DNA of 64,000 nucleotides, from sequence record OQ708376.1. One strand, written 5' to 3'. This document shows positions 26,164 through 54,707 of this stretch, piece by piece. A program made the position numbers and the translations under genes. The notes beneath the pieces were generated by a model. It saw only the letters and a list, made by a program, of their open reading frames with translations, did no database searches and had not been told where the DNA came from. How positions within the stretch are numbered: the stretch's first letter is position 1; each line of letters opens with the position of its first letter.

Positions 26164-26406
26164 ATGAAAGTACTATCTGAATTAGAAATGTATCATAGAT
26201 TTAATAAGTACTATCATTTACTTAAGCCTATACAGAGGATTAAATGTCCATTTGAAGAGAAACAGGTATTAATTTATGAGCATAAGTTATTTGTATCATT
26301 AGGTACGAATGAACAAGAGTATTATTTGAAGTTGTACTTGATTACATTAATAGATTTAATTCACTATAAAACCAAACAAGCTAATAAAGAGAAATATGAA
26401 AACTAA
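26164..26406 (+). CDS. GTNYQ-family paralogue 28
   Basis: SLGTNEQE. Confidence 0.85.
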   Translation: MKVLSELEMYHRFNKYYHLLKPIQRIKCPFEEKQVLIYEHKLFVSLGTNEQEYYLKLYLITLIDLIHYKTKQANKEKYEN

Positions 26407-26740
26407 TATACAACTCAAGGTATATAAATCATTTGAACATACATATATCAAAAGTAGTCTATGTAGAGATGTAATGGATTACAAGGGTAAGCCATTCACA
26501 ATTACCTATGATTCTTATGTTAGTGATTTATATATATCATTTGTTAATTACGAAAATAAAATATACAAGCACGTTGATATTAAAGATTTAAGTACTTTAT
26601 CACCAGAGGAATACTTTCAGGAATCATTAGTATGGGATTTAGAGTTCCCTATGCCATTAGTACATAAGATGATAGTACTAATGAAAGAATCTAAACAGGA
26701 GCCTAATAGTGGTTATGAAGAACACACAGTTGAGTATTAA
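26396..26740 (+). CDS. EExxFQ-motif family protein
   Basis: LSPEEYFQESLVWD. Confidence 0.8.
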   Translation: MKTNIQLKVYKSFEHTYIKSSLCRDVMDYKGKPFTITYDSYVSDLYISFVNYENKIYKHVDIKDLSTLSPEEYFQESLVWDLEFPMPLVHKMIVLMKESKQEPNSGYEEHTVEY

Positions 26741-27110
26741 AAGTACTGATAATACTAAGAGTTATACAAGCTCAAGTACTGTGACAATCGAAGTGAATTC
26801 TATTAATGCTGGTAATGCAGTAGATAAGTTCTTTATTGCTCAAGGGTACAGGAAAGATATTCATCAATACTGTTCAGTATATGGGGAGTACAATTCTACT
26901 GAAGATATAATTTATTGGTCAACACATCAAGATTATATAACTAAAATTGGCGTTCCAGATGTTAGTACTTTATCTGAAGAAGAATACTTTCAGTACAGCT
27001 TAGTACATGATGTACCTATACCTTTAGGGTTAATCAAGGGTATGCAGGAAGAGGTTCATAAGCTTAAATCCATGAGTTCAGGTACTTTCATTAGAACAGT
27101 GCAATACTAG
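26715..27110 (+). CDS. EExxFQ-motif family protein
   Basis: LSEEEYFQYSLVHD. Confidence 0.8.
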   Translation: MKNTQLSIKSTDNTKSYTSSSTVTIEVNSINAGNAVDKFFIAQGYRKDIHQYCSVYGEYNSTEDIIYWSTHQDYITKIGVPDVSTLSEEEYFQYSLVHDVPIPLGLIKGMQEEVHKLKSMSSGTFIRTVQY

Positions 27111-27111
27111 C

Positions 27112-27140
27112 TTGACAGTACTTTTTATTACTGATATAGT
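27112..27140 (+). promoter_or_regulatory. sigma70 promoter
   Basis: TTGACA-17-TATAGT. Confidence 0.75.
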
Positions 27141-27169
27141 GCACCAACGTTAATCATAGGGTACAGATT

Positions 27170-27415
27170 ATGTTAAAATTTTTAAATTTCCTTATCGTCT
27201 TGTGTATTGTTCTTGGAATTGCACCGTTTGTATTAGCGTATCTGGATTCAGATGAAATGCAGAAGATGAATTGCACAAAGACAGGACAGAGTAGAGAAGA
27301 GACGGTTATGATGCCTGTAACGGTTATTGTGAATAACATACCAATTACGAACATGATTCCTACCCTAACGACAACGTACCAGTACTCTTGTGCAGACGGA
27401 GAGAGGTGGAGATGA
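27170..27415 (+). CDS. membrane-anchored protein
   Basis: N-terminal TM helix; two later Cys. Confidence 0.75.
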   Translation: MLKFLNFLIVLCIVLGIAPFVLAYLDSDEMQKMNCTKTGQSREETVMMPVTVIVNNIPITNMIPTLTTTYQYSCADGERWR

Positions 27416-27732
27416 AATTTAATATAGCAAAAACATCGAATGTATGTATATTTGGTTATGCAGATGAGTTAGGTGATATTGACATTCTTTTGTACAAAAA
27501 GGATGGTGTTATGCATTTCAAGTACCAGGATGAAGAGGCAGACAATTATCCTTTACCTAATTTAGTACAAATGCAGGAAGAGGAATTATTCCAGTACAGC
27601 TTAGTATATGACATTGATATTTGCACGATGCCAGTACTAATTAATATTCAAAAAGTGATGCTCGATGTGTTTGATAGGCTAATACAAGGCACACAAGGAA
27701 GAACCATATATGTCAATGTACAAGACAATTAA
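27412..27732 (+). CDS. EExxFQ-motif family protein
   Basis: MQEEELFQYSLVYD. Confidence 0.8.
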   Translation: MKFNIAKTSNVCIFGYADELGDIDILLYKKDGVMHFKYQDEEADNYPLPNLVQMQEEELFQYSLVYDIDICTMPVLINIQKVMLDVFDRLIQGTQGRTIYVNVQDN

Positions 27733-27925
27733 TCAAGAATGGAAGACCCAAAAGTACAGGGAATTCAGTACTAGTTTAACAAAAGATGCATTGAATTTAA
27801 AAAGAACAGAGTTTGATATGTTTATTTTTCTTGGAACACGTTCACAGGAACAATACATTCATTATTATATAAGTTCATTGCGAACGGAGATCGTATACAA
27901 AACACAGGGTATTATAAAAAAGTAA
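27710..27925 (+). CDS. GTNYQ-family paralogue 29
   Basis: FLGTRSQE. Confidence 0.8.
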   Translation: MSMYKTINQEWKTQKYREFSTSLTKDALNLKRTEFDMFIFLGTRSQEQYIHYYISSLRTEIVYKTQGIIKK

Positions 27926-27933
27926 ACCAATAT

Positions 27934-28161
27934 TTGTACGCTACAAAGTACAGGGATTTTTGTTTAAAGGGTGGTGATGAAGATTTTTCTTTGCGATTAT
28001 CAGAATTTAATCTGTTATTTTATCTTGGTACATCGGAACAAGAAGAAATGGCACAGAAATTTATCAAGCACCTTGAACAAAAAATTCATATGCAAATTTT
28101 GATGCTTAAGGTACATAATGAGATAAACAAATATGAACCCAACAATAGTACAGGATCTTAA
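27934..28161 (+). CDS. GTNYQ-family paralogue 30
   Basis: YLGTSEQE; TTG start. Confidence 0.75.
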   Translation: MYATKYRDFCLKGGDEDFSLRLSEFNLLFYLGTSEQEEMAQKFIKHLEQKIHMQILMLKVHNEINKYEPNNSTGS

Positions 28162-28671: not shown

Positions 28672-28853
28672 TGCACACACCGCACAAAAATACAAAAACG
28701 ATAAATGTTTTAAATGATTCTTTATTGGTGAGTATAAATTTATATTATAAAATTCATTTAAATGGTGGTATTGAAAATTTTAGTTATTATTTGAGTGCAA
28801 TATCGCAAGAGCATTTAATATACCAAGATCATTTATTGCACCCGAATCCATAA
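28671..28853 (+). CDS. hypothetical protein
   Basis: TAATG overlap. Confidence 0.55.
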   Translation: MHTPHKNTKTINVLNDSLLVSINLYYKIHLNGGIENFSYYLSAISQEHLIYQDHLLHPNP

Positions 28854-28861
28854 GGCAAATT

Positions 28862-29407
28862 ATGAATGATATAGAATTATTAGCACACAAGATTAGTACA
28901 ATAATGCTTATCCTCAATAACAACCATCCTATATCGCAGATAGATGGAATCCTGAGTCAGAGGACAGGTGGTAGTTTATATTTGACATTAACAGAGGTTA
29001 TCGCAAGGAATTACATTGATATTGAAATCGAGAACAGTGATGCATCAGGAAAGGTTGATGTAGGTGCATTAATCAGTTCAAATCCAGTATCAGCATCCCC
29101 ATTGACCAAAGGTGTTAGTACAGGATTCGAAGGGTATTTGTGGTACAATACCAATGATGATTATTTTATATATCAGCATTCCAATACAAATTATGATGAA
29201 GACAAATTTCAGTTCATAGACCCTTATGATGAAGCTGAAGTATTTCAAAAATCATTAATCACAAAACCGCATGAGATGATGTATCTAATGTTATTCAGTA
29301 CAATGCATTTGAATCGATTAATTAAAGGTTTAAAATTTTATATTCAATTGAATTTAGTCCATGTAGTTTATGATTTATTAATGCAAGGATATAGTTATGA
29401 AGTATAA
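28862..29407 (+). CDS. EExxFQ-motif family protein
   Basis: DEAEVFQKSLI. Confidence 0.8.
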   Translation: MNDIELLAHKISTIMLILNNNHPISQIDGILSQRTGGSLYLTLTEVIARNYIDIEIENSDASGKVDVGALISSNPVSASPLTKGVSTGFEGYLWYNTNDDYFIYQHSNTNYDEDKFQFIDPYDEAEVFQKSLITKPHEMMYLMLFSTMHLNRLIKGLKFYIQLNLVHVVYDLLMQGYSYEV

Positions 29408-29708
29408 AATGATGTATACCCCAGATATGATTTATGTTGAATTAGAAGATGATGACGATGGGTGGAATTTGATTTATTCAAGAAGTTCAGGTTGGTACAT
29501 GGCACATTTAAATGATTCGATAGTTACAGATTATTTTGTAGATTTCAATACATTATCCGATGAAGAATTGTTCCAACAGCAATTAGTAATTGACACGGGT
29601 GGTTATGATGTTTTATTATTAAAAAAGATACAGAAAGCTGTTATTGATTTTAAGCCCATGATATGGCAAAGGAAATATTATGACCTCGAAGTACCGTACC
29701 AGCAATGA
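29397..29708 (+). CDS. EExxFQ-motif family protein
   Basis: LSDEELFQQQLVID. Confidence 0.8.
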   Translation: MKYKMMYTPDMIYVELEDDDDGWNLIYSRSSGWYMAHLNDSIVTDYFVDFNTLSDEELFQQQLVIDTGGYDVLLLKKIQKAVIDFKPMIWQRKYYDLEVPYQQ

Positions 29709-30246
29709 AATTCAGTACACCTACGCTAATGCAATCCTTATGGGACAAAAGTTAGCTTGTATTGTTGCAGCCTTATATAATGCACAGAAAGATTACAAGC
29801 GTCACATCCACAAATGTATTGGTATTATTCCATCGAAGTACAATACATATATTGCGTGCACGAGTCATTTTGATAAACGATTCAATACACCTGATACCCC
29901 AAATGCCAGTAGTGTTATTGGTCTTTTGGATTTCGCACCTGGTGCTGTTATTGGAAAGAATGATTTAGAGTACACATGGTATAATAAAAATGCCCCGTTA
30001 GTAATGGTAAAATATGATACAGAAACGAATAAAACAATAGAGTACAATACATATAAATCAGAGGAAGAATTTTTCCAAGGTTCATTGCTTGTGCCAGTGC
30101 GTTTGTTGTTTTATAATGTCCTTATTAGTACAGTACACAATAGTCCATTACACAAGAATCACAAAATTAATTTCAATTTTTGTGCTTATGCGATTGATGG
30201 TGTGTATGAGTGTTTAATGGAGGTATTGAGTTATGAAGCTGAATAA
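29680..30246 (+). CDS. EExxFQ-motif family protein
   Basis: SEEEFFQGSLL. Confidence 0.8.
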   Translation: MTSKYRTSNEIQYTYANAILMGQKLACIVAALYNAQKDYKRHIHKCIGIIPSKYNTYIACTSHFDKRFNTPDTPNASSVIGLLDFAPGAVIGKNDLEYTWYNKNAPLVMVKYDTETNKTIEYNTYKSEEEFFQGSLLVPVRLLFYNVLISTVHNSPLHKNHKINFNFCAYAIDGVYECLMEVLSYEAE

Positions 30247-30574
30247 TACATTTGATATTAATAAGTTAAGAGAATGGTTTTATAGTATTGAAATTGAAGC
30301 CATCCCGTATCATAGATATGAACAATATAATTTAACCAGTATTGATATCAGTGAGTTGTACGCGTATTATCAAAGTGCATTAGAGATGCATAAGTTATTT
30401 TTGAGTACAGATTTTGTTCTAAATTACAATTTTGAGGAATTTAATAATTATAATTTAGTACAGAAATATGTAGTAGCAAAGTACATGTACAATCAAGGTA
30501 TCAAAGGTTGCCTCGAATTCAATACCGTTCTTATTTTAGTTGAGGTAATTTTATGCACCGCATGTCTGATTTAG
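30233..30574 (+). CDS. hypothetical protein
   Basis: ORF track, coupled. Confidence 0.7.
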   Translation: MKLNNTFDINKLREWFYSIEIEAIPYHRYEQYNLTSIDISELYAYYQSALEMHKLFLSTDFVLNYNFEEFNNYNLVQKYVVAKYMYNQGIKGCLEFNTVLILVEVILCTACLI

Positions 30575-31050
30575 AGTTCAGTTTAGATGCAGCCTTTAAA
30601 TTTGTTCACAAAATAGAAACAATATATCGTACATTATGTGCAATAACATCAGTATCAAAAGAGTTTGATGTTGGTGAAAGGTATCAGGTGTGGAATAATT
30701 CATTTTATAATAAAGAACATTCTGCGACGGCATTTTATATTTTAGCATTTAATCCCAGCAATTGTTACCCAGAGAAGCATGAACGTTATCCAAATGACGA
30801 CATGTGGTTTGAGTACAAAGAAGATGCTGATATGTCGTCAATTGTAGTTCCTGATGATTTTAATGCACAAGATTTAACAGAAGAGTGGTGGTTCCAGCAG
30901 AATTTAGTACATGATGATATTGATTTATTTTTCTATATTGCATTTAAAATGCTTTATCACAACAATATAGTTAAAGAAAGTTTATCGTTTTCATGTCTAT
31001 ATATTGATGATTTGTACAATGAAATTCAAATAAACATGCCTGTATCGTAA
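30553..31050 (+). CDS. EExxFQ-motif family protein
   Basis: LTEEWWFQQNLVHD. Confidence 0.8.
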   Translation: MHRMSDLEFSLDAAFKFVHKIETIYRTLCAITSVSKEFDVGERYQVWNNSFYNKEHSATAFYILAFNPSNCYPEKHERYPNDDMWFEYKEDADMSSIVVPDDFNAQDLTEEWWFQQNLVHDDIDLFFYIAFKMLYHNNIVKESLSFSCLYIDDLYNEIQINMPVS

Positions 31051-31106
31051 GATATGGGCTTTTTTCGTTTTGGTATTGACAAAGAAGTGCAAAGCTGTTA
31101 TCATGT
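31038..31106 (+). terminator. terminator (GTAA tetraloop, T6) followed by sigma70 promoter
   Basis: GCCTGTATC-GTAA-GATATGGGC-T6; TTGACA-17-TATCAT at 31076. Confidence 0.7.
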
Positions 31107-31132
31107 GTAATCATTTTAAAGGAGAACATATA

Positions 31133-31645
31133 GTGAGTTTCATAATCCCAAGTACATACGAAGATGCATCAAGTGCAGTTCATAAGATTCATTATATTTT
31201 TAATTTAATTATTAGATCTGCAAAAATTAAAATGTATGCACCTCTTGTGACAAATAATCGAAATGAAGAAATTTTTATTAGCACAGACAAAATTATTTTT
31301 CCATATTTCAATGAAGATAGATTGTGGTTCATACATTTAGCTGCATTACAAAAATATAAGATGTCAATTCGTAATAATTTGGATATACCGTTATATCATC
31401 CTGATATTGGAGAGGATGAATATTTTCAGTACAGTACAGTACACCGCCATGAAGATATCTTTGTTGCTATGCTTATTGCTAAATTGAATACCGTTGATTT
31501 GGAGCAGTACAAATACAATAATAAATCATGTAAGATCATAATCCCTGCATTCATAGCTCTTTATGATTATGTGGTGCATAACAAAAAAGATGATACATAT
31601 GCTTTCAATGAAGAGTATTTGAATTTTTTTAAGGAGAACATATGA
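31133..31645 (+). CDS. EExxFQ-motif family protein
   Basis: GEDEYFQYSTVH; GTG start after GGAG. Confidence 0.75.
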   Translation: MSFIIPSTYEDASSAVHKIHYIFNLIIRSAKIKMYAPLVTNNRNEEIFISTDKIIFPYFNEDRLWFIHLAALQKYKMSIRNNLDIPLYHPDIGEDEYFQYSTVHRHEDIFVAMLIAKLNTVDLEQYKYNNKSCKIIIPAFIALYDYVVHNKKDDTYAFNEEYLNFFKENI

Positions 31646-32169
31646 GCAGTGAAGTGCTGAAATCAATGACATTCAATGAAATTGGTACATTTAAAGATAA
31701 GATCATTGATTGCATTGAATACATGATTTGTAGTAATATCGAAAGTATCGAGATATTTAACAAGACAAATCGCTCTTACCATATGATGTACATTGCAAAC
31801 AATAATGGTATCATTCCATTTATTTCGGATAGTACAATATGGTACGCATGTGATACGAAAAAAACCACAATAGGTTTACATTCATTTGAGACACATTATG
31901 ATCTAATTATTCCTGAACATTGTATGCAAGAAGAAGAATATTTTCAAATGCAATGTATACATTCACCATTAGTGTTGTTTAGTTTATATATTATACCTTA
32001 TATCACCAAATGTGTTCATGAGAATAAAGCTCCGTGGAATCATGAATTTGTATCGTTGAAGTTATTGTATAATGTATTAGTAGAATATTATGATTACAGG
32101 CACAATGGTACAATCAGTGATGTATGGGATTTTGAATCGCTAAGGGTGAAAACATACACAGGTGAATGA
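31642..32169 (+). CDS. EExxFQ-motif family protein
   Basis: QEEEYFQMQCIH. Confidence 0.8.
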   Translation: MSSEVLKSMTFNEIGTFKDKIIDCIEYMICSNIESIEIFNKTNRSYHMMYIANNNGIIPFISDSTIWYACDTKKTTIGLHSFETHYDLIIPEHCMQEEEYFQMQCIHSPLVLFSLYIIPYITKCVHENKAPWNHEFVSLKLLYNVLVEYYDYRHNGTISDVWDFESLRVKTYTGE

Positions 32170-32785
32170 TATGACCAGAATTAAAATGTATGATTTGATG
32201 CAGTACAGTAAAATTGCCATTCCAGTGCTTAATAAAGTGCTGGATGCATTCATTGCCAAATACCCTGAGAATTCAGTGTTATGTATTCCATTTAGTGTTC
32301 CAGATAAAGATGATATATTCCAAGTGAATGTCAGTACACGTGGTATTACATTACAGCAGAAATACATGGATACGGAATATTATGGAATAAAGTTGGATTC
32401 AGTACAGGGTTCAAAATCAGCCTATGATTTTTTTGTTCCTAATAATATAGAGTCATGGGAAACAAACATTTCAAAGAAAGATGAAAATGATGTTCCTATT
32501 AGTGGTGTGTTCAACAATAAAGTTTTTTATTATTACGAAACCGACAAATTCCCTGAAGAGTTATATTACAATTCAGAAATGAATGAAGATGTAGATGCAT
32601 TCATGTTTCAATTATCTTTAGTACATGATATCATTGATGTTCAAGAGTTAAGAGCAGAAATCAATTTAGCTAAAGAGTTATCGGACATGCTGCCACCGTT
32701 TAGTATGCTTTTTTGTGAAGGTGGTTATTTTTCAAAAGAAGTGTTTGAACATTTCGTAGATGTTGTAAAAGGGTTGGATATATAG
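32162..32785 (+). CDS. EExxFQ-motif family protein
   Basis: DVDAFMFQLSLVHD. Confidence 0.8.
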   Translation: MNDMTRIKMYDLMQYSKIAIPVLNKVLDAFIAKYPENSVLCIPFSVPDKDDIFQVNVSTRGITLQQKYMDTEYYGIKLDSVQGSKSAYDFFVPNNIESWETNISKKDENDVPISGVFNNKVFYYYETDKFPEELYYNSEMNEDVDAFMFQLSLVHDIIDVQELRAEINLAKELSDMLPPFSMLFCEGGYFSKEVFEHFVDVVKGLDI

Positions 32786-32786
32786 T

Positions 32787-32981: not shown

Positions 32982-32989
32982 GGTAAAAA

Positions 32990-33505
32990 ATGCATCAACA
33001 CAAGCATCATTCATATGATTTTGCAATTAACATTATGAAGTTTATTCGAGCGTTGGAGGATGGGAAGCTTAGTCATAAGTACAGGAAAGAGGGTAACAAT
33101 TGGTTCAGAAATGATTCCGAGTTCAGTTGTCATAAAATCGTGTATAGTAATCAGTACAGTGCCAATTACCTACAAGATGTAGTGATGTGTTTTGAATACG
33201 TGTTGCAGTTCAGGGGTTCAATCCAAGATGAGTTGATGGAGAACATGTACATCCGATACCTTCCAATGCTCAAAGATGAAAATGTATTATTAAATTCAAT
33301 ATACCAACGAGTTCGTGAAATTGAGTGCAGGGATATATTAGATACAGAAGAATCGTATTTCCAGCAATCCCTGATTTATGCACCTGATTTATTACAGGTA
33401 CATAATTTGTTTAATACATTACGTCAAAACATCAGTACAGACATATTTTTGTCATTATCGGATTATGATACATTTGTCAAAGATTTAGAGGAAATAGGTT
33501 TATGA
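32990..33505 (+). CDS. EExxFQ-motif family protein
   Basis: TEESYFQQSLIY. Confidence 0.8.
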   Translation: MHQHKHHSYDFAINIMKFIRALEDGKLSHKYRKEGNNWFRNDSEFSCHKIVYSNQYSANYLQDVVMCFEYVLQFRGSIQDELMENMYIRYLPMLKDENVLLNSIYQRVREIECRDILDTEESYFQQSLIYAPDLLQVHNLFNTLRQNISTDIFLSLSDYDTFVKDLEEIGL

Positions 33506-33846
33506 GTCGATTTTCGGTTTATATAGTAAACGTCAGTAAAGATGGTAGTTTAATTGAATTTGATGTAGTTGATAACAATGATAATTCATATGGTATTAAG
33601 GTACAGGACAATGATGTACAGTTCAGTACAAGGACAAATTTTGAGAATCCAGTCCAAGTTCCGAATTTCATAGAAGATGAAGCTGCACGATTCCAATACG
33701 AAACGGCATATGACAATGTACATATGCATATTATTATGCAAACGAGTTTAGTTCAATTAGTTCCTTTGTTCAGACAAAATATATATGTACATGAAGTGTC
33801 GATTAATGGCATTCAAAGTTCCGTTTTGTTCGGTACAAATATGTAA
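33502..33846 (+). CDS. EExxFQ-motif family protein
   Basis: EDEAARFQYETAYD. Confidence 0.75.
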   Translation: MSRFSVYIVNVSKDGSLIEFDVVDNNDNSYGIKVQDNDVQFSTRTNFENPVQVPNFIEDEAARFQYETAYDNVHMHIIMQTSLVQLVPLFRQNIYVHEVSINGIQSSVLFGTNM

Positions 33847-33856
33847 GGAAAGTACA

Positions 33857-34399
33857 ATGAGTTTATTAGATACATTAGAAAAAGACAGAAGTGCAATTAA
33901 GCGTTTAAAAGAGCAAGTACAAAAGATTGTATACAACGTTGATAAGTTTGAAGTCCCAGGAAGATTTGGTGATATTTCCCATACGGAGATCAAATCCCTT
34001 AAGTCAGATTTGTTGATTAAAAATAAAAATGGGTTGATTTTAGTTTTGAGTTCAGATATGATGGGGGCAACACATAGTTATAATGCAGTATCGGTGCGTT
34101 CAGAGTGTGAAGGTATATATCTATCACAGGGTTTCAATAGCGAGACACAGGTTTGTTTTTGTGATGCAGTACATGACCCTATGAAGTTCACGAGAAGTGA
34201 AGCCCAAGCGTTATTAGAGCTATCAGACGAGAGTTTGTTTCAGTACAGTACAATGTATGACAATGATAAGCTTCGTTGTATGTACGCTGTAAAGCATTAT
34301 ACACAGGAGTTCTCTGGATTTGCATACCTTTTAGTTAGAACCAATACCATATATATTGATATGTTAGAAGATTACATCGATAAAGTTGTTAATGTATGA
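33857..34399 (+). CDS. EExxFQ-motif family protein
   Basis: LSDESLFQYSTMYD. Confidence 0.8.
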   Translation: MSLLDTLEKDRSAIKRLKEQVQKIVYNVDKFEVPGRFGDISHTEIKSLKSDLLIKNKNGLILVLSSDMMGATHSYNAVSVRSECEGIYLSQGFNSETQVCFCDAVHDPMKFTRSEAQALLELSDESLFQYSTMYDNDKLRCMYAVKHYTQEFSGFAYLLVRTNTIYIDMLEDYIDKVVNV

Positions 34400-35583: not shown

Positions 35584-35744
35584 TGGAATTTGATTTTTTA
35601 ATATCAGTACATACGGTCAAGGGTGCACCTCAGTACCTTTGTAATTTAAACAAAGGTGATTTGATTATGGATACAGATACAGAGGCTGTATACAGTTCTA
35701 ATATTCTGTACAAATTCAGTACTAATCTGAAGGAGATTTTATGA
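35583..35744 (+). pseudogene. truncated duplicate of 36112..36468
   Basis: MEFDFLISVHT...CNLNKGDL then diverges; lacks FQ motif; 53 aa. Confidence 0.65.
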
Positions 35745-36824: not shown

Positions 36825-36833
36825 GATTATAAA

Positions 36834-37328: not shown

Positions 37329-37329
37329 A

Positions 37330-43501: not shown

Positions 43502-43560
43502 CACCCACCGATTCTTTGTGATATAATCCCTTTATATTAATTGTAAAGGGTTATAACACA

Positions 43561-46276: not shown

Positions 46277-46836
46277 ATATCAATGATTACCAATTTCATA
46301 GGCTTGAATTTCGTCATTGTGTTGCATTTGCAAAAACATTGATGTGCATCATTGACACTCTTTCATCCAAACAATTTCGTAAGGATAATGATTTATTTCT
46401 GAAAAAAGGTCGTGTAACATCATCCGATATCAGTGTTGAACTATTTGTTGATATCAGTGTTGATACCGGAGACAGTACAAGGGTTGGTTGTATAGGTCAT
46501 ATTGGTACACATTGCTTCACATGGAATCCAAATACAAGTCAAGTACGAATTGATTATAGAAATTCACGTTGGGTTGATCTTAGTACTGAATCCGATTTAG
46601 AATCAGCTATGTTCCAGCTAAGTTTAATTCACAATCCTAATGAACTTCTTTACATTATTACTTTCAGTTATCTGTTACAAAACTACGATAATCCATCAGG
46701 GTTTTTCATAGAATCGGATATAGAAGAAATTATGGAAGAGTTTCCTAGTTTAAAGGATATTCTGGAAGAAAAAGATTTCTATGAAGACTTCAGAGATTTA
46801 TACGACATGCACTTGGAGTTATTTAAGAATGGATAA
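46273..46836 (+). CDS. EExxFQ-motif family protein
   Basis: DLESAMFQLSLIHN. Confidence 0.8.
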   Translation: MNINDYQFHRLEFRHCVAFAKTLMCIIDTLSSKQFRKDNDLFLKKGRVTSSDISVELFVDISVDTGDSTRVGCIGHIGTHCFTWNPNTSQVRIDYRNSRWVDLSTESDLESAMFQLSLIHNPNELLYIITFSYLLQNYDNPSGFFIESDIEEIMEEFPSLKDILEEKDFYEDFRDLYDMHLELFKNG

Positions 46837-47347
46837 AGATGATATTCTAATTAGACTAATTAAGAGTTTAATAAAGTTCTCAAATAATGATGTCGATACA
46901 TACAAAGTAGGGGATATTGAATTCAAATCATTTGGTATGTACGGTGAGGACAAAACATATTATGCGTCAATGAAATTTCAAGATTTTCACGAGATGTTAA
47001 TATCGTTATCATATGAAGATGTTGATCCAAGATGGAGTTCCAGTATTTCACTATCGAGAATGGTAATTCGTAGTAAGCATCGTTACATTTCGTCAAAGAA
47101 TACTCCTAACTTGATTAATATTGTGTTGAATGAAAATACCAATCCTATATCTAAACTTGATATCGTACCGTTAACCGATGAAGTACTTTTTCAATTGAGT
47201 ACCATTTGTGATGAAGATGTGATATCATGTATGAAAATTTATGAGAAGGTTGGGAGTGATATTCCCATGAACTATTACCTAACTATAGATGGAACGTACC
47301 TTCGAGATGAGGTTCTAGCGTACATTGACAGTGTTTTACCAAAATAA
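46829..47347 (+). CDS. EExxFQ-motif family protein
   Basis: LTDEVLFQLSTICD. Confidence 0.8.
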   Translation: MDKDDILIRLIKSLIKFSNNDVDTYKVGDIEFKSFGMYGEDKTYYASMKFQDFHEMLISLSYEDVDPRWSSSISLSRMVIRSKHRYISSKNTPNLINIVLNENTNPISKLDIVPLTDEVLFQLSTICDEDVISCMKIYEKVGSDIPMNYYLTIDGTYLRDEVLAYIDSVLPK

Positions 47348-47406
47348 AGACCCGTATGGGTCTTTTTGTGTTTATGGCTTTACAAGAGCATTCAGGTGTG
47401 TTATAC
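47346..47406 (+). terminator. terminator followed by sigma70 promoter
   Basis: AAAGACCC-GTAT-GGGTCTTT-TT; TTTACA-17-TATACT. Confidence 0.8.
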
Positions 47407-47434
47407 TTGATTTTAAATAGAGTTGGAGGAATCT

Positions 47435-48001
47435 ATGAGTACTGAATTAATTAAAGAAGTCACATTACTTCTGAAGCATTGTTTTAAGTTCATTCCTGAT
47501 ACTGGTTCCCGCCAGTACATTAAAGTCAATGAGAAATATAACATCAATATCCTTGCATCCGAAACTGCAAGCAGTTATGCTAACATTGAGTTGGATTCTG
47601 AAGAAAAATATACAGTATTACAAATCATATCAGATGTACAACGTAAACAAGATTATCGTTCTTCATTTTACAACGATCATCTGTGTGTTTGCTCAAACTT
47701 CAGTGAGAATAAAATTGTGTATAAGAATTTATACACACATGAAGTGATTGATACATATAATTATAAAATTTCATCTGATGAATACAATGTGCTAATGTTC
47801 AACGCAAACCTTTTGTATGATGCCAGTACTGTACGCTGTTTAGAGTTAGCATATAAAATTCCAAAGATCATGGAAAGAAAAGATTTGATTCACTTTAAAA
47901 CTATTTTAAAATACAGTACAAAAGAATTAGAGGATTTAGTACAGGCTCTTAAGAATTTCATTAATGAACATGTACCTGTTAAATTCGAGGATGCACAATG
48001 A
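47435..48001 (+). CDS. hypothetical protein (divergent FQ member)
   Basis: DEYNVLMFNANLLYD. Confidence 0.75.
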   Translation: MSTELIKEVTLLLKHCFKFIPDTGSRQYIKVNEKYNINILASETASSYANIELDSEEKYTVLQIISDVQRKQDYRSSFYNDHLCVCSNFSENKIVYKNLYTHEVIDTYNYKISSDEYNVLMFNANLLYDASTVRCLELAYKIPKIMERKDLIHFKTILKYSTKELEDLVQALKNFINEHVPVKFEDAQ

Positions 48002-48582
48002 ACCATATCAGAACTAAAATTTTGAGACTCATGCATGACATTGCAGAACTTTCAGAGATTCATGACATTACAGAAATTGTTGAATTTGATGATTATCGAC
48101 TGAAAATTGAAAACAAATCCAAACATCGTTTTGGATCAGTTCAGTTGGATGTATATAAAACTTATGAATTTTCTAAAAAAATTAAAAGTTCATGGGATAC
48201 GATTACTATGTACATTCGCACATCCAGAAATCGTGAACGTATTGGTTCTATTTCTTCTAATATGGTATTTGCGAATGCATTACATGAAAAAATGAATAAA
48301 ATTGTAGAATCTGATTTCAGTGAAGATGATGGTTTTATTGGGTTGGATGTTCCACCAGAATTAGACCAAAGTGAAGATATTCGAGATGCATTCATTTTCC
48401 AGAAATCATTGTTGGACAATTACAAAGAATTCGAGTACTTAATGCTTTGTTACGATACTGCAAAAGTTCTTGATTGTGGTGAACTAGTTATGTACAATGA
48501 TTTTATCAATTACAAGACTGATGTTCTGAATACACTACTTCAAAATATAGAATCGGTTAAGGAAAAATATGAACGCTTATAG
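47998..48582 (+). CDS. EExxFQ-motif family protein
   Basis: IRDAFIFQKSLLDN. Confidence 0.8.
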   Translation: MNHIRTKILRLMHDIAELSEIHDITEIVEFDDYRLKIENKSKHRFGSVQLDVYKTYEFSKKIKSSWDTITMYIRTSRNRERIGSISSNMVFANALHEKMNKIVESDFSEDDGFIGLDVPPELDQSEDIRDAFIFQKSLLDNYKEFEYLMLCYDTAKVLDCGELVMYNDFINYKTDVLNTLLQNIESVKEKYERL

Positions 48583-49147
48583 TTATATGACAGAACGCCA
48601 TCAGTTATTATATGATATCAGTACAAAAATGTTATCAATTGTTAGTAGTGCAAAAGAAATTGAAAAACAATACCTCATCCGTGATGTAGCAATTTCATCT
48701 AAATGTTGGTCCAATGAATATTACGATCACGGTATTCTTACTATTTCTGGGGCTAGAAATATTTGTATTGTAAAAAATAAAAATAAAAGTAATGAAGAGT
48801 GTGAGATTATAACCGATATACAAATTAAGGATGATGGAAGTTTTTCACACCACCCATTCCATATTAGTACTATTGGTGTTTTATATAATATTAAAGTACT
48901 ATTCGGTGATGAAGAGTATGTGTTAAAAGCCATCAATCCAGATTCAAGTACAGTTGAAGAAGAACTGTTCCAGATGAGCACTGTTATACCTGAAGAGGTT
49001 CTTAGTACTGTTATTTTTTGTAGTTTAATTTATCATGAATACAAAAAGTACCAGTTCGATTTCCACATGTTAGGAACATACATCTTCAATAATTTGAATG
49101 TAGATCGTTTAACAGCATTAAATGCAGCAATGGATAAGGTGCTATAA
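48569..49147 (+). CDS. EExxFQ-motif family protein
   Basis: VEEELFQMSTVI. Confidence 0.8.
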   Translation: MNAYSYMTERHQLLYDISTKMLSIVSSAKEIEKQYLIRDVAISSKCWSNEYYDHGILTISGARNICIVKNKNKSNEECEIITDIQIKDDGSFSHHPFHISTIGVLYNIKVLFGDEEYVLKAINPDSSTVEEELFQMSTVIPEEVLSTVIFCSLIYHEYKKYQFDFHMLGTYIFNNLNVDRLTALNAAMDKVL

Positions 49148-49575
49148 TGACAAGAGATGATTGTTTGTACATATGGGATATAATTGAAACTACACTTTCA
49201 AATCCAGAAAATTATAAAACAAAAAAAAGACAACGACACAAAATATGGATAGATTTGTTCGTTGAGGGCATACACGCAGTGACTATCTGGGATTCACCGA
49301 GGGCATCATCATCTACTCTGTTGGACAATGAATGCATTGATTGCATTAATTCCACTTTTCATCTCTACGGTACTACAATTTTTGGTACATTTCTGGATAT
49401 TGAAAGTAAAGATGATATTGATTCACTTGCGTTACAATACCAAGTACTATATAATACTAAATTAATTTACGATTTAGTACTAGCTTCTTATGTGTATAAA
49501 TTAATGATGAAATATAATCATATTTCTGTTTCAGTTTATACTAAGGATATTCTTTCATTAAGAGACAAAACATGA
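49147..49575 (+). CDS. hypothetical protein (divergent FQ member)
   Basis: DIDSLALQYQVLYN. Confidence 0.7.
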   Translation: MTRDDCLYIWDIIETTLSNPENYKTKKRQRHKIWIDLFVEGIHAVTIWDSPRASSSTLLDNECIDCINSTFHLYGTTIFGTFLDIESKDDIDSLALQYQVLYNTKLIYDLVLASYVYKLMMKYNHISVSVYTKDILSLRDKT

Positions 49576-50081
49576 GTTTATTAAATGCACGCGAATTGGT
49601 TGAGATGTATGAGATTTTGTCTTCATATAAAAATTCTCATGGAGATGTGATTCTCGACAAAAAGTTCCATGTCAGTGTTGAACATATATCAAATATAGAT
49701 ATGATTTCTTTGGTGGAAAGTAATAAGTCAGGTCTTGAACGCGATATCATGCGTTTGATTTATATTCCCAAACCATCATATACTAATGATAGTTCAATTA
49801 GTAATGAGACATTCATGTATAGTCCCGGTACGGATTCTACTATAGTATCGCTGTCCAATAAATCAATGGATACTTTCCAATTCATATATACCAGTACTGA
49901 TAACATTGAAGAAATTGAATTTCAAAACAATACATTAAGTCCATGTAGTAGTGTTATAACCTTTATGTCATATCTATGGTCAACTAAAACAAGTGCTGTT
50001 GTATATAGTTCAAATTATACACAAGATAGTATTGTTGAATCATATAAAGTTCTAAAGGAATACTATGAAAATAACAAATGA
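49572..50081 (+). CDS. EExxFQ-motif family protein
   Basis: IEEIEFQNNTL. Confidence 0.75.
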   Translation: MSLLNARELVEMYEILSSYKNSHGDVILDKKFHVSVEHISNIDMISLVESNKSGLERDIMRLIYIPKPSYTNDSSISNETFMYSPGTDSTIVSLSNKSMDTFQFIYTSTDNIEEIEFQNNTLSPCSSVITFMSYLWSTKTSAVVYSSNYTQDSIVESYKVLKEYYENNK

Positions 50082-50646
50082 TTTTATTAAAAGTGTAGTA
50101 CACCCTATGCTTAGTATTATGAAAAAAATACAGAATCTACCGGAAGATAACGATTACAAGTTTAATCGTTTTGATTCAGATGTGTTTTGTATTGAAATTG
50201 AAATTAATAACAATCGCAATTTACATTTAAAATTCAAAGAATCTTCGAGTCCGTACTACAACTTTGATATGAATTTTAAAATAGATACTGACATTGAAGA
50301 AAACATAATATCAAATCATACTAGCAAAAATGGTTTTATGCATAGAACTACTATGTACAATAATAAAAATAGTATTATATCTAAATGGAATCAACAATTC
50401 ACTAAAATTTGTGAAATTGAATATAATGATTTTGGTGAAGAACATTACTTTCAGTTAAGTACAATTCATGAACTTCCACCATATGATTATGTTAAAACAT
50501 GGTTTGATATTCATAATATAATTGATGATGCAATCAAACTTCCATTTGGTGTGTCAATATCATATACTGCTCCTAAAACATTTGTTTTTACTGAAGATAT
50601 GATTATGAAAAAGATATGGGCAATCATCCCACTTATGATGGATTAA
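50065..50646 (+). CDS. EExxFQ-motif family protein
   Basis: FGEEHYFQLSTIHE. Confidence 0.8.
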   Translation: MKITNDFIKSVVHPMLSIMKKIQNLPEDNDYKFNRFDSDVFCIEIEINNNRNLHLKFKESSSPYYNFDMNFKIDTDIEENIISNHTSKNGFMHRTTMYNNKNSIISKWNQQFTKICEIEYNDFGEEHYFQLSTIHELPPYDYVKTWFDIHNIIDDAIKLPFGVSISYTAPKTFVFTEDMIMKKIWAIIPLMMD

Positions 50647-50707
50647 ATTTGTACCAGGGGTTGACTCTGGTTTTTTTGTATGATACATTGTTCTCAAGGA
50701 GAATTTT

Positions 50708-51259
50708 ATGAACTACAATCATGATCTTTTTACATTATGTGCATCCAAATGTGTTGAAGGATGGGCAGATAAAATCAATACCATAATTCATCGATATCTC
50801 GTCTTTAGTTCCCGTGCACGAAGTGAGGGGGCTATGGATTTCAAATATACACTATCTATTGATGGTGTAACTATCCATGCAGACGAAGAACGTCTGAACA
50901 TTAATTTGTATGATTCCTGTGTATTTGCTATTCACCAAAAGATGGGGAAAGGATGGGGTTGTAATAACATTAACTCCAAAGCTATCTTTTGGGTTGGTCA
51001 CCATCAGACAGTACTTGATCCTTCAATCAAATCTAATCTTTTATCCGATAATATGGTTTATGATTTATTGTACTCCGAAGAACAACATTTTCAGTTAAGT
51101 ACATTGCATGTTCTGGCACAGTACGAGGATTGTTACAAAACATTAGAACTATGCCATTCCCTTGAACTTAAAGATAAATTAATACAAGTTTACCCTTCAT
51201 TCTTTCATGAAGAAGTCCAAAGTACACTAGATCATATTTTATATGGATACGATAAATGA
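50708..51259 (+). CDS. EExxFQ-motif family protein
   Basis: SEEQHFQLSTLH. Confidence 0.8.
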   Translation: MNYNHDLFTLCASKCVEGWADKINTIIHRYLVFSSRARSEGAMDFKYTLSIDGVTIHADEERLNINLYDSCVFAIHQKMGKGWGCNNINSKAIFWVGHHQTVLDPSIKSNLLSDNMVYDLLYSEEQHFQLSTLHVLAQYEDCYKTLELCHSLELKDKLIQVYPSFFHEEVQSTLDHILYGYDK

Positions 51260-51858
51260 GAAAAAGTTATCAAGAAGCTATTGACTTAATTCGTGAAGTT
51301 ATCAAGGTGGCTCCTGCTGCTATTGAGTTCAAGAAGTCCATATACAAGAAGTATGGGTCAATGTCGAGTATGTGCTTTCAAAAGAAACGTAGAGCATTCA
51401 CTACCCAGTACTGGAATGATTCTATCATCCTGAGCAATGAGACTCAGCGTATTTTAACACTAGAATCTGAACCTAATGAGTACGGGGAAGGAAACATTTG
51501 TGTACCTGATTATGATGAAATTAACTTCAACTGCGGTGATTTTGAAACAACATTATTACTTCATGAGGGTTATCCAGAAGGTGATGTATTAGCTGAATAC
51601 AATCCAAAAACTAAAATTCTCAAAAGAGGAATTCAGTTCACTATTAATAACAAAGATGATGTTGAAGCAGCACTGATGCAACTGAGTACAAGTGAACCTA
51701 TCACTATTAGTGTAGAAGAGTTATGGGGAATTATTTCAGTACTCAATGAGTGCTACAAAGTAAAATCATTGCGTAAACACAGCATTATATTACATACCAA
51801 TATGGCAAATATAAAATGTAAGCACATTCAAGAAATGGTGGTTCCAGATGGACTTTAA
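51256..51858 (+). CDS. EExxFQ-motif family protein (divergent)
   Basis: DVEAALMQLSTS. Confidence 0.75.
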   Translation: MRKSYQEAIDLIREVIKVAPAAIEFKKSIYKKYGSMSSMCFQKKRRAFTTQYWNDSIILSNETQRILTLESEPNEYGEGNICVPDYDEINFNCGDFETTLLLHEGYPEGDVLAEYNPKTKILKRGIQFTINNKDDVEAALMQLSTSEPITISVEELWGIISVLNECYKVKSLRKHSIILHTNMANIKCKHIQEMVVPDGL

Positions 51859-52432
51859 AGAAATTGAAAGTAAATTAAAGTACTTCAAAGATATCAAACT
51901 TCTTTGGAAAAAGTATAAAGTTGATTACAATTTCAGTGATGATGAGACAATAAAATACATTGAGATTAATATCAAAATCAAGTTCAAGAATAATAATTAT
52001 GGTGAAGTAACCTTAAATCATACTGGTATATCACTCAAGGACTATGATGGTACAACACTCGCATATTTTGACTTCACACCAGAACCAGGTGAAACACTAC
52101 TTAGTGAGATAAATTCCTATGACATGGAAGTGTTCGGCGGGAATCCGTTACTGTTCCGACTTTCTGAAGAGTGGAGTGAAGAGTACTACACTTACAAAGA
52201 TGGTGTAGTACTTGACATTCATGGAGAAGTTGTGAATGACTTGGAAGAACGTTTGTTCCAAGAATTGTGTGTTTCAAATACTTCATATGCATACAATCAT
52301 ATCCTTGACATGTTTGATTTATATAGTAAAATAGATGCTGAAATGAAGGCACATGGTATTCATTACCTTACAATTAACGACTATGCTCAACTCGAAACCG
52401 CTGTGAAAGCATTGACTAAAGTACTGAAATAG
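51848..52432 (+). CDS. EExxFQ-motif family protein
   Basis: DLEERLFQELCV. Confidence 0.8.
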   Translation: MDFKEIESKLKYFKDIKLLWKKYKVDYNFSDDETIKYIEINIKIKFKNNNYGEVTLNHTGISLKDYDGTTLAYFDFTPEPGETLLSEINSYDMEVFGGNPLLFRLSEEWSEEYYTYKDGVVLDIHGEVVNDLEERLFQELCVSNTSYAYNHILDMFDLYSKIDAEMKAHGIHYLTINDYAQLETAVKALTKVLK

Positions 52433-52441
52433 GAATGAAAT

Positions 52442-52855
52442 ATGAAACTGTATCATGCGAGTACTGTAAAAATTGATAACTTTTATATCCCGTATGGTGG
52501 TCTTCATATGGGAGGTAAACACAGTGCTTTGGAAGCTGCATTACGCAAGCTGAGAAGCCCACTGAACGTAGTAGACGCATGTACAGTATACTTGCATACC
52601 TTAGAAGTTGATGTTGATAACGTGCTTCTGTGTGAAGATTTAGGCAGTGATGATGAGTGGCGTTCACTTATTGAGAATTGCACTGCTCAAGGTTATGATG
52701 CTGTTCAGTACAAAAATGATTACGAGCCAGACAATGTTCCTAGCTTTATGATTTGGGATGCATCTAAAGTTCGCATCATTGAAGTTGATGCTATGCATAT
52801 GGATGAAGCTGAAATGATTATCGAAGATTTTCTTGATGAATATGAAGGTGTATAA
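52442..52855 (+). CDS. ADP-ribosyltransferase-fold protein (putative)
   Basis: LYHAS strand-1 His, GLHMG, GYDAVQYKNDYE, terminal FMIWD.SKVRI as in ART-PolyVal-like domains. Confidence 0.6.
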   Translation: MKLYHASTVKIDNFYIPYGGLHMGGKHSALEAALRKLRSPLNVVDACTVYLHTLEVDVDNVLLCEDLGSDDEWRSLIENCTAQGYDAVQYKNDYEPDNVPSFMIWDASKVRIIEVDAMHMDEAEMIIEDFLDEYEGV

Positions 52856-53391
52856 TGACTGACCCGATGGTAGCACTGGCACGTACTAAGTTACTATTAA
52901 AGATTGGTGAGATTTTTACGGTTCTTCTGTCCAATAATATTGATATTACTGAGCTAGATATTAAGCAACCGTGGGAAGTGACTATGTTCTCGGCGTTCCA
53001 CCGATTGTCATATAAAGGTGAAAGTGTTCTTGATTTTAACCCTAAAGCAAAATTCATAGATTATGCTGCGTTGTACAGAGAGTTGCACCGAAATATTTAT
53101 TCCGGTTGTATAACCAATAACTTCAAAGAAATTAAAGTTCAAACTGCATCACATGAGTTCAATGATTTACTTTATCCAGAATTTAATCTAACGGAAGAAT
53201 TACTCTTTCAGTACTCGTTAATTCTCACAAATCTCGAAACGCTAGAGTACTACAAAGAGTTAGTAGATATTTTTATGAATACACGACTTTCAAAAGATAT
53301 TGTGATATTCTGGTATACAGAGCATGTTACGGAGGAATTGCTTACTGAATTTCTTCTAAATATGACAGCTATAAAGGAGAAGTTATGTTAG
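52855..53391 (+). CDS. EExxFQ-motif family protein
   Basis: LTEELLFQYSLIL. Confidence 0.8.
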   Translation: MTDPMVALARTKLLLKIGEIFTVLLSNNIDITELDIKQPWEVTMFSAFHRLSYKGESVLDFNPKAKFIDYAALYRELHRNIYSGCITNNFKEIKVQTASHEFNDLLYPEFNLTEELLFQYSLILTNLETLEYYKELVDIFMNTRLSKDIVIFWYTEHVTEELLTEFLLNMTAIKEKLC

Positions 53392-53858
53392 ATATTTTAG
53401 GAAACATCGATACTGCAAATTATTTTATCCAGGACGCACTGTTCAATACAGTTCAACAAGGATTAGAAGTTCGTCATAACGTTTACCAAGGTGATGGTTA
53501 TTTCGTTGATATTGTTGAGGCACGAAAGAATACGTTTAATGTTAACATTACAACACTGGGTAGACAGAACATTGCACGAATTTTAGTAAGTAAAGATGAA
53601 ATTGTATTGAGATACAGTGCTAAGTTTATGTTGACTTATAAGAAAAAAACTGATATGTTCAGTACTAATTTATTTGATGAGCCATTTGACCTTGAAGATA
53701 TTGAAGCTACTTTCTTTACTCAAAGTACTATGGTAAAATACACTGATGTTCAATTTTCTGCTGATGTAATGTCGGAAACATTACAAATGATCAAGGTATT
53801 ATTTTATGCATTTGAGCAATTTAGAGAAGAAAGAAACAAGGTTAACAACCACAGATGA
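53385..53858 (+). CDS. EExxFQ-motif family protein (divergent)
   Basis: DIEATFFTQSTM. Confidence 0.75.
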   Translation: MLDILGNIDTANYFIQDALFNTVQQGLEVRHNVYQGDGYFVDIVEARKNTFNVNITTLGRQNIARILVSKDEIVLRYSAKFMLTYKKKTDMFSTNLFDEPFDLEDIEATFFTQSTMVKYTDVQFSADVMSETLQMIKVLFYAFEQFREERNKVNNHR

Positions 53859-54219
53859 ACTAATAGAGGCGATCACTAAGGAGTCAAAATACCACAAAGG
53901 GATTCGTCTATATTTTATAGATATTGGTTCAATGGAAGGCATATACATTTATGGTTCACAATCTTTATCTTATGATGTAATGCCAAAAAAACATGTAAAA
54001 ATCTTTTTAGGTTCAGATAAAAAAACTTTCTTGACAATTAATGATAAAAACGTTATTATGAATTCGTTGGGTCATGATAAGGTGGAAATTGATCTAAACA
54101 CACTGGAGGATATTGATTTTTTTCAATACGAGTGTTTAGGTGTTGACTTACATGGCATTAGTAGCGATATGATAAAATCATTAATCAAATATTTCGAAGG
54201 TGTTCATAAATGTATCTAA
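53806..54219 (+). CDS. EExxFQ-motif family protein
   Basis: LEDIDFFQYECL. Confidence 0.75.
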   Translation: MHLSNLEKKETRLTTTDELIEAITKESKYHKGIRLYFIDIGSMEGIYIYGSQSLSYDVMPKKHVKIFLGSDKKTFLTINDKNVIMNSLGHDKVEIDLNTLEDIDFFQYECLGVDLHGISSDMIKSLIKYFEGVHKCI

Positions 54220-54707
54220 CTAAATCAATGAAAAATTCATTTGATAAAATCAAGAGTTGTCTTGATGGGGAAAATATTACAAGTGTTACACAAACTGCTG
54301 ACCAAATTCAAAGCAGTTCAAGTGATTGTACTGTTATTTTAGGTTTACATAGTCTACGTTTATCAATAGTAAATAATATTGACAACACTGCTATTGTAAT
54401 CACACCATGCCATATTCAAAATGAGAATGGTGTATATCTTCATCACATGGGAACAGTATTTCATATTTTCAATACAAACGAAAACATTGTTAAGGAATAC
54501 AAATCTCTTAATATTGATTCAGGTGAATTATTTCAAATGAGTACTTTGTACTCATGTAATTTTACAGATACTTCATGTATTTTGCCATTTTTCTTGGAAA
54601 TTATTAAGAAAATGGAAAATTTAAAACGTGAATACAATAAAGAAATGGTTCCTGAAGCTATATTAAATATTACTAATGCTATAGAGAAGTATAATGCAGT
54701 GACTTAA
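54210..54707 (+). CDS. EExxFQ-motif family protein
   Basis: IDSGELFQMSTLYS. Confidence 0.8.
   Translation: MYLTKSMKNSFDKIKSCLDGENITSVTQTADQIQSSSSDCTVILGLHSLRLSIVNNIDNTAIVITPCHIQNENGVYLHHMGTVFHIFNTNENIVKEYKSLNIDSGELFQMSTLYSCNFTDTSCILPFFLEIIKKMENLKREYNKEMVPEAILNITNAIEKYNAVT

Follow-up and report, generated by a model that had tools for sequence, protein, structure and literature searches.

Large families of small tandem paralogs are known from eukaryotic viruses. The MGF360/505/110 families of African swine fever virus (ASFV) and the Bcl-2-like and other immune-evasion paralogs of poxviruses comprise dozens of small genes lying in tandem in terminal or early regions, with one fold, very low pairwise identity, variation from strain to strain and a presumed role in host interaction. 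A different arrangement is found in F-box, SOCS-box and poxviral PRANC adaptors, whose boxes are autonomous domains of 40-50 amino acids (aa) that occur in fusion with many unrelated recognition domains and have Skp1 or Elongin BC as partner. Among phages, the T4-type internal proteins form a hypervariable set with one short constant segment that is N-terminal, cleaved and packaging-directing, and the jumbo phage G carries an expansion of about 35 zinc ribbons that has been called 'unprecedented' (Iyer et al., 2021; PMC7824862). In this study, we analysed the first 64 kb (positions 1-64000, hereafter the window) of Escherichia phage vB_EcoM_CRJP21 (OQ708376.1; Asteriusvirus; 366,301 bp) and found that one small alpha/beta domain, soluble and mostly acidic, has undergone a lineage-specific tandem expansion in the region 26396-54707, which gave rise to what we call the FQ family. 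It comprises 42 firm copies and about eight decayed ones over 28 kb, or about 8% of the phage's genes.

The FQ family has the features of a single-fold viral multigene family, namely tandem same-strand paralogs, homology that extends beyond the shared motif and faster evolution than neighbouring genes, and in its many small genes, very low pairwise identity and strain-to-strain variation it resembles the ASFV and poxvirus families. It has, however, no sequence or structural homology to them, its host is bacterial, and unlike them it retains one strikingly invariant 13-residue segment. With the adaptors, to which the first-pass annotation of this DNA had likened it, it has the logic of a variable and a constant part in common. 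The likeness goes no further, as the constant part is here a stretch of 13 residues within one homologous domain rather than a box that Pfam recognises, and the N-terminal parts are homologous to one another. We also know of no cullin-type hub in bacteria. Whereas the constant segment of T4-type internal proteins is N-terminal and cleaved, the FQ motif is central and structural, and the proteins were not detected in phAPEC6 virions. The zinc ribbons of phage G are likewise a small domain that has multiplied within one jumbo-phage lineage, but the fold is different and the FQ array is larger (42-50 copies, which tops the 35 of phage G) and is kept as an array across at least two genera. Moreover, the family has no Pfam entry and no solved structural relative.

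The first-pass annotation had described about 50 proteins with a common acidic motif usually located 30-70 residues from the C-terminus, and both statements were borne out. Of the 55 plus-strand open reading frames (ORFs) in 26396-54707 that are 95 aa or longer, 50 contain a motif-like segment according to a position score, and the motif Phe lies 32-75 residues before the C-terminus. A strict pattern ([FYWLM]FQ.[SN][LTCV][VILM]) gave 31 matches in the three plus frames, all within 26612-54528 and none outside 26396-54707, and two in the minus frames. The improved consensus reads (S/T)EEx(Y/L/F)FQxS(L/T)(V/I/L)(Y/H/W/F)(D/N). Pairwise phmmer comparison placed 31 ORFs in one component, an iterated hidden Markov model (HMM) joined 38, and a profile built from database representatives only (the external profile) recovered 42 at E<=2e-4. 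Eight degenerate ORFs, starting at 41662, 47435, 47998, 49147, 49572, 51256, 53385 and 53806, were individually non-significant. Two subfamilies that had been proposed, SLxxALExA...FYLD (36834-39158 and relatives) and CNLxKGD (35206, 36112 and 36465), are both real, while the weak copies proposed at 57414 and 58872 turned out to be motif-like strings only: the former has no external-profile match and the latter reaches E=0.98 with the in-window profile. Short forms carry an extra D-(Y/L)-(T/S)-x-L upstream of the motif and, about 20 residues beyond it, a Gln that is 90% conserved. Almost all conserved polar residues of the family lie in the motif (T/S102, E103, E104, Q108, S110 and D114); the residue after the Gln is the most variable motif position, and the next residue, Ser, is conserved. 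The proteins are acidic (median isoelectric point 5.0, net charge -9), and no transmembrane-like segment was found in them.

That the proteins are otherwise unrelated, as had been supposed, holds only in pairwise comparison. When the 14 motif residues were cut out, phmmer retained N-terminal groups of only 6, 3 and 2 members and C-terminal groups of 5, 4, 2 and 2. Profiles revealed more in a leave-out test, in which each query part was scored with an HMM of the pre- or post-motif columns of a 113-sequence alignment, the query and its >30% identical relatives being excluded, and the score was expressed as z against 200 shuffles of that part. The motif-less N-terminal part reached z>=4 (maximum 15.5) in 16 of 25 long members and the post-motif part in 14 of 25. 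Conserved hydrophobic positions likewise span the long form (A10, I13, I16, Y36, I72, Y74, I80, L118, L127, F135 and L149). AlphaFold2, run on the long member 38706-39155 with the 113-sequence alignment, gave a confident model (predicted local distance difference test [pLDDT] 91.2, predicted template modelling score [pTM] 0.87) with a helix at residues 3-21, seven strands over residues 30-91 and a short helix at 93-97. The motif follows as a helix at 103-109 (EEYYFQN) and a turn at 110-114 (STVYD), with a pLDDT of about 98, and then come a helix at 115-129, a strand at 135-138 (FYLD) and C-terminal helical turns. The short member 36112-36465 (pLDDT 85.1, pTM 0.82) was modelled with five strands, the motif helix at 65-74, a helix at 83-99 and a strand at 108-112. 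The order of elements, sheet, motif helix, main helix and terminal strand, is thus identical in the two members modelled.

According to these models, the long form consists of an N-terminal helix, a seven-strand antiparallel sheet, the motif, the main helix, one strand and a C-terminal helix, and the short form has the same order without the two terminal helices. The beta-rich upstream and helical downstream parts read from the sequence alone are thus reproduced, with the addition that long members also begin with an alpha-helix. Because both models place the motif between the sheet and the main helix, we take it to be an integral junction, a short helix and turn linking the variable sheet to the conserved main helix, and no separable box. 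In a profile search of 1.84 billion representatives, 152 clusters were found at E<=1e-3, all of them single-domain proteins of 65-202 aa; fusions of the domain to another one are thus absent from this set. A portable docking motif carried by unrelated modules is thus not supported; the profile and model results point instead to one globally homologous fold, which the first-pass annotation had itself named, together with the lack of a shared partner, as the outcome that would speak against its adaptor library. From its picture of a variable and a constant part, the sharply conserved 13-residue segment in very divergent proteins stands and the autonomous box falls. Since nearly all conserved polar residues lie in the motif, a constant site with a variable surface is still a fair description.

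The domain is confined to Rak2-like jumbo phages, and the motif is kept in relatives at 20-30% identity. Pfam gave no match, whether to F-box, SOCS-box or any other family, for 38 members at E<=0.01 or for eight members at E<=1, and NCBIfam gave none for the family members. Foldseek against the PDB returned best E values of 0.65 (long model) and 0.052 (short model) with TM-scores below 0.45, and the family profile found nothing significant among PDB sequences (best E 1.2). In BFVD, the structural relatives are uncharacterised proteins only, from phages 121Q, SP27, RaK2 (four proteins with consecutive accessions), fHe-Yen9-04, Serratia phage BF and GAP32, with TM-scores of 0.6-0.9 to relatives; a 124-aa RaK2 protein has a target-normalised TM-score of 0.70 to the long model. 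Proteins of the window match phrog_9317, 12674, 15629, 13866, 22855, 19795, 34636, 31297 and 36945 with E values down to 1e-144, all of 'unknown function'. PHROGs thus splits the family into at least nine unlinked groups, and neither its unity nor the motif is recorded there. We found no description of the family in the genome literature on RaK2, CBB, phAPEC6, Sharanji or fEgEco12 or in a survey of 224 jumbo phages; the RaK2 genome paper states that about 10% of RaK2 proteins are paralogs and nothing further on the family. Once they are seen as one family with one fold, some 50 separate 'hypothetical proteins' per genome become one tractable problem. A tblastn search with distant representatives against GenBank phages gave one weak match (Klebsiella phage Muenster) or none. 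One such representative, P0061, with a single weak tblastn match in the GenBank phage collection, is the last of four tandem ORFs (154, 149, 60 and 159 aa) on a 1.7-kb metagenomic contig of Logan SRR15237817.

Klebsiella phage Muenster (Alcyoneusvirus) has a syntenic array directly after its terminal repeat, with at least 35 HMM-positive copies bearing the same motif. An equivalent block in RaK2-group Klebsiella phages belongs to the same family. At the same relative position, the Muenster array is broken by a conserved gene that is annotated as a putative ADP-ribosyltransferase (ART) and is 59% identical to window 52442-52855; beyond the array come the same Dam methyltransferase and nucleotidyltransferase. 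The Muenster_123 record names this product a putative ADP-ribosyltransferase (HHpred 4GV2_A, 99.8%); the window gene has no Pfam or PDB sequence match and is 90-100% identical within the genus (90.5% in phage A4). The array of the congeneric phage A4 has 43 copies in collinear order, and most of them are only 25-45% identical to their positional counterparts, against 90-100% for the flanking genes and the embedded ART-like gene. At the 45268 locus, counterparts across the genus are 100, 65, 41 and 31% identical. Conserved position and copy number with fast-diverging sequence are the pattern expected of genes facing host variability. In the A4 record, an HMM-positive family member inside the array (17064-17600) is named 'DNA ligase', a name that looks spurious, and a 470-aa ORF (31131-32543) is named 'methyl-accepting chemotaxis protein'. 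In Salmonella phages SD-2_S15, SD-15_S21, SD-6_S16 and SD-1_S14 (310-326 kb), only the C-terminal third of the 45268 ortholog is left; this shortening suggests array deletions in these smaller genomes.

Substitution patterns show that the motif is held by selection on the protein. The pooled ratio of nonsynonymous to synonymous substitution (dN/dS) is 0.30-0.39 for the family versus 0.14-0.15 for neighbouring genes; among the family's own residues, those of the motif have 0.14-0.20 and all others 0.34-0.41; against the 95%-identical phage E9.1 the values are 0.30 and 0.15, and 0.14 and 0.34, respectively. The degenerate copies, with a dN/dS of 0.20 against E9.1, are therefore still constrained. 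The motif codons vary synonymously (TTT/TTC 22/17, CAG/CAA 24/15, Ser from both AGY and TCN), indicating that selection acts on the protein; on this ground a DNA-level signal, whether for gene conversion, recombination or an RNA element, was rejected as the reason for the motif. Recombination between copies has left a trace: the database protein P0053 is an in-frame chimera of residues 1-85 of the 42270 type and the C-terminus of the neighbouring 42622 type, joined about 10 residues past the motif, so recombination between neighbour copies gives viable-looking hybrids.

Taking these results together, we favour a lineage-specific expansion of one new fold whose members are probably early binders of host or defence proteins, to which we assign a probability of roughly 0.55. 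The hydrophobic residues of the motif (F, L/T, V/I and the aromatic residue) would anchor the junction of sheet and helix, and S/T, EE and D would cap the two helices, while the invariant Gln with the acidic pair would form the family's only conserved polar patch. To judge from sequence matches to sigma-70 promoters, host RNA polymerase may transcribe the genes early, and the proteins would remain cytoplasmic. They could constitute a diversified library whose members bind or inhibit host proteins, defence or toxin effectors being the most plausible, with target specificity placed in the hypervariable sheet and termini and with new variants arising by duplication, divergence and recombination of neighbour copies. 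Several points weigh against this reading. About nine divergent long members have no homology outside the motif that the leave-out profiles can detect; six conserved polar residues in 13 positions exceed the usual need of helix capping; dN/dS stays below 1 throughout the pooled data, with no direct signature of positive selection; and the promoter-like sites are overall no commoner than in shuffled sequence, only their placement in gaps being suggestive. Several Asteriusviruses are being developed as therapeutic phages, and E. coli K-12 MG1655 is a host of Sharanji. Whether the family determines host range or counter-defence can therefore be put to direct experiment.

The conserved acidic and polar patch (EE, Q, S and D) could instead bind one common host or phage partner, making the array a library of hub-docking adaptors in which the variable sheet recruits different targets and the partner, if a phage protein, might be the product of the embedded ADP-ribosyltransferase-like gene. 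Essentially all conserved polar residues do lie in the motif, where protein-level selection is also strongest; the motif is unchanged across genera infecting different Enterobacterales, and both genera carry the ART-like gene within the array, better conserved (59% identity) than the family (20-40%). Yet the motif forms an integral secondary-structure element of a single domain and is modelled with maximal confidence, its conserved residues are compatible with roles as helix caps and in the core, it never occurs on another type of domain among the 152 clusters, and copies in which it has degenerated are still under purifying selection. We thus consider such a library unlikely, and slightly less likely again that the invariant EE-FQ-S-D patch docks one common partner, whether a host hub or the embedded enzyme. 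If there were such a partner, Rak2-like jumbo phages would carry about 50 substrate-recruiting adaptors on a new fold, a bacterial-virus counterpart of F-box or PRANC logic that is apparently undescribed in the literature searched. A hub on the capsid is disfavoured, because none of the region's proteins is in the published phAPEC6 virion proteome: no gp410-470 product (the orthologous region) appears among its 62 proteins, within the sensitivity of that study and for that one phage (PMC7247149, Table 1). The virion or capsid hub was rejected on these proteomics.

The same proteome bears on packaged and ejected internal proteins with a common capsid-targeting signal, as in T4. A hypervariable family with one constant segment would suit such a role, and phAPEC6 does have a capsid inner body (PMC7247149), but the region's products are missing from the virion, the motif is central (32-75 residues from the C-terminus) rather than N-terminal, and the promoters resemble early, host-type ones, which leaves this explanation very improbable. 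A small catalytic or ligand- or metal-binding site formed by the E-E...Q...S...D cluster, the paralogs being enzymes or sponges of varied specificity, agrees with the clustering of invariant polar residues at a helix N-terminus and with proteins that are small, soluble and acidic; it is improbable, however, given that there is no similarity to enzyme or sponge folds in the PDB or to Pfam or NCBIfam families, that no further conserved polar residue would complete the site and that fifty paralogous enzymes of 100-200 aa would be unusual. Proteases of the 3C and NIa types recognise E-x-x-Y-x-Q and L-F-Q, with which EEYYFQ and EELFQ in the family may be compared. On the strength of that resemblance of E-x-x-(Y/L)-F-Q to these sites, the motif might be a protease recognition site at which cleavage frees the N- and C-terminal parts. 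Against this, the segment is a predicted helix with a pLDDT of about 98 inside a compact domain and not an exposed flexible linker, variability within the motif is highest right after Q while the following S is conserved, and conserved residues of the fold continue well past the cleavage point; in the 64 kb examined of the 366-kb genome no such protease was identified, and according to the phAPEC6 proteome the proteins are missing from virions, the site of action of the prohead protease. The idea was rejected on the structural context and the variable residue after Q, and we give it next to no credence.

Individual copies are listed here by position, all on the plus strand, with length, motif and E value in the external profile. 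In the first part of the array, short members lie at 26396-26740 (114 aa, SPEEYFQESLVWD, 1.1e-11), 26715-27110 (131 aa, SEEEYFQYSLVHD, 2.3e-12), 27412-27732 (106 aa, QEEELFQYSLVYD, 2.1e-13), 29397-29708 (103 aa, SDEELFQQQLVID, 8.7e-8) and 33502-33846 (114 aa, DEAARFQYETAYD, 8.1e-6). They are accompanied by long members at 28862-29407 (181 aa, DEAEVFQKSLITK, 9.1e-19), 29680-30246 (188 aa, SEEEFFQGSLLVP, 2.9e-18), 30553-31050 (165 aa, TEEWWFQQNLVHD, 1.8e-15), 31103-31645 (180 aa, GEDEYFQYSTVHR, 6.1e-13), 31642-32169 (175 aa, QEEEYFQMQCIHS, 4e-13), 32171-32785 (204 aa, VDAFMFQLSLVHD, 9.6e-5), 32990-33505 (171 aa, TEESYFQQSLIYA, 2.7e-19) and 33785-34399 (204 aa, SDESLFQYSTMYD, 6.9e-13).

Next come the short CNLxKGD members at 35206-35583 (125 aa, DDAALFQEALVFD, 5.8e-12), 36112-36468 (118 aa, modelled, DTAELFQESLVFD, 5.6e-16) and 36465-36824 (119 aa, DDGELFQAALVFD, 1.7e-11), with another short member at 35741-36112 (123 aa, SEEEFFQESTVWN, 2.9e-11). 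The SLxxALExA/FYLD subfamily follows as five long members at 36834-37328 (164 aa, SEEYYFQQSTVYD, 1e-23), 37330-37800 (156 aa, SEEYYFQQNTIYE, 1.9e-20), 37797-38240 (147 aa, TEEYYFQQSLIFN, 1.2e-21), 38240-38728 (162 aa, SEEYYFQNSTLYN, 1.5e-23; phrog_9317) and 38706-39158 (150 aa, modelled, SEEYYFQNSTVYD, 1.5e-24). Then there are a short member at 39155-39469 (104 aa, HESFIFQESLVWD, 4.3e-5) and long members at 39774-40223 (149 aa, TEEGYFQGSTVYE, 1.4e-22), 40223-40756 (177 aa, weakened motif, DEQCFQLSCTDP, 2e-4) and 41111-41671 (186 aa, TEENIFQNSVLHD, 6.3e-12).

The ORF at 41662-42264 (200 aa) may be a decayed member; it has a motif-like score only, at an ambiguous position, and no HMM support. 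Beyond it, short members are found at 42270-42632 (120 aa, QEDELFQESLVWD, 3.7e-11), 42622-42957 (111 aa, DEGELFQESLVFN, 1.6e-10), 44509-44871 (120 aa, SEEELFQQSTIST, 2.8e-13) and 44855-45268 (137 aa, TPDELFQYSLVLP, 4.2e-10), and long ones at 42947-43501 (184 aa, NQEYYFQLSLLFP, 6.8e-26), 43561-44037 (158 aa, TEEEFFQYSTVYP, 3.3e-24), 44034-44519 (161 aa, SEEMYFQGSCIHD, 1.1e-22), 45268-45750 (160 aa, SEESYFQNSLIYT, 3.1e-24; hypervariable between sister phages), 46273-46836 (187 aa, LESAMFQLSLIHN, 7.4e-18; phrog_22855) and 46781-47347 (188 aa, TDEVLFQLSTICD, 3.3e-14). The ORF at 45734-46276 (180 aa) lacks FQ and is not itself HMM-positive; it may be another decayed copy, since the A4 ORF at the corresponding position (28704-29318) is.

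The last part of the array contains most of the weaker copies. Probable members are 47435-48001 (188 aa, degenerate motif, NVLMFNANLLYD, 0.56), whose C-terminal part pairs with that of 47998 and whose dN/dS against phage E9.1 is 0.10, 47998-48582 (194 aa, with motif, RDAFIFQKSLLDN, 0.28), 49147-49575 (142 aa, degenerate, DSLALQYQVLYN, 0.058), 49572-50081 (169 aa, IEEIEFQNNTLSP, 0.015), 51256-51858 (200 aa, VEAALMQLSTSEP, 0.0061), 53385-53858 (157 aa, degenerate, IEATFFTQSTMVK, 0.12) and 53806-54219 (137 aa, EDIDFFQYECLGV, 0.033). Interspersed with them are firm long members at 48569-49147 (192 aa, VEEELFQMSTVIP, 1e-9), 50065-50646 (193 aa, GEEHYFQLSTIHE, 2.4e-11), 50708-51259 (183 aa, SEEQHFQLSTLHV, 5.7e-5), 51848-52432 (194 aa, LEERLFQELCVSN, 8.3e-5), 52855-53391 (178 aa, TEELLFQYSLILT, 1.5e-6) and, as the last of the array, 54210-54707 (165 aa, DSGELFQMSTLYS, 1.5e-5). 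The conserved non-family gene 52442-52855, whose Muenster ortholog is the putative ADP-ribosyltransferase described above, lies on the same strand.

The genes are tightly packed, 54 of 63 junctions overlapping or being at most 10 nt apart. Strong candidate promoters, identified as consensus matches only, lie on the plus strand in the few intergenic gaps: a sigma-70-like site at 27112-27140 (11/12 match with TG) and a perfect sigma-70 consensus at 43498-43527 (12/12 with TG). At 31038-31104, a terminator-like hairpin (31038-31059) is followed by a sigma-70-like promoter (31076-31104); at 47346-47407, a similar hairpin (47346-47365) precedes a promoter-like site (47379-47407); and at 50653-50689, the hairpin (50653-50671) overlaps the promoter-like site (50661-50689). 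The syntenic region of phage CBB has been considered early (PMC5259590).

As to the wider setting, nearly all genes of the window are on the plus strand, and the GC skew is positive over the entire 1-64000, consistent with uniform plus-strand transcription. The window is AT-rich, its GC content dropping from about 38-39% (1-20 kb) to 30-33% over the FQ array and two further arrays. The 8 kb from 26396 share about 95% identity with PBECO4, 121Q, phAPEC6, Sharanji and others. Of the coding sequences in the first 30 kb of the deposited record, among them the start of the FQ array, one is annotated as an acetyltransferase (11432-11788) and all the rest as 'hypothetical protein'. The second tandem family comprises about 30 ORFs of 63-90 aa at 20220-26406 with a common (F/L)LGTxxQE...Y segment and matches phrog_4148 (unknown function). 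Four copies of it are interspersed in the FQ array (27710-27925, 27934-28161, 40734-40952 and 40930-41121), and with a dN/dS of 0.32-0.41 it evolves as fast as the FQ family. The third consists of 5-7 ORFs of about 90-100 aa at 61778-63187 (perhaps to 63923), which match phrog_35943 (unknown function) and begin with MN(Y/L)xD(I/F)..TYK..YDL. Other paralog pairs occur among the small upstream ORFs, namely 2520-2786 with 14488-14892 and 7447-7770 with 14078-14401.

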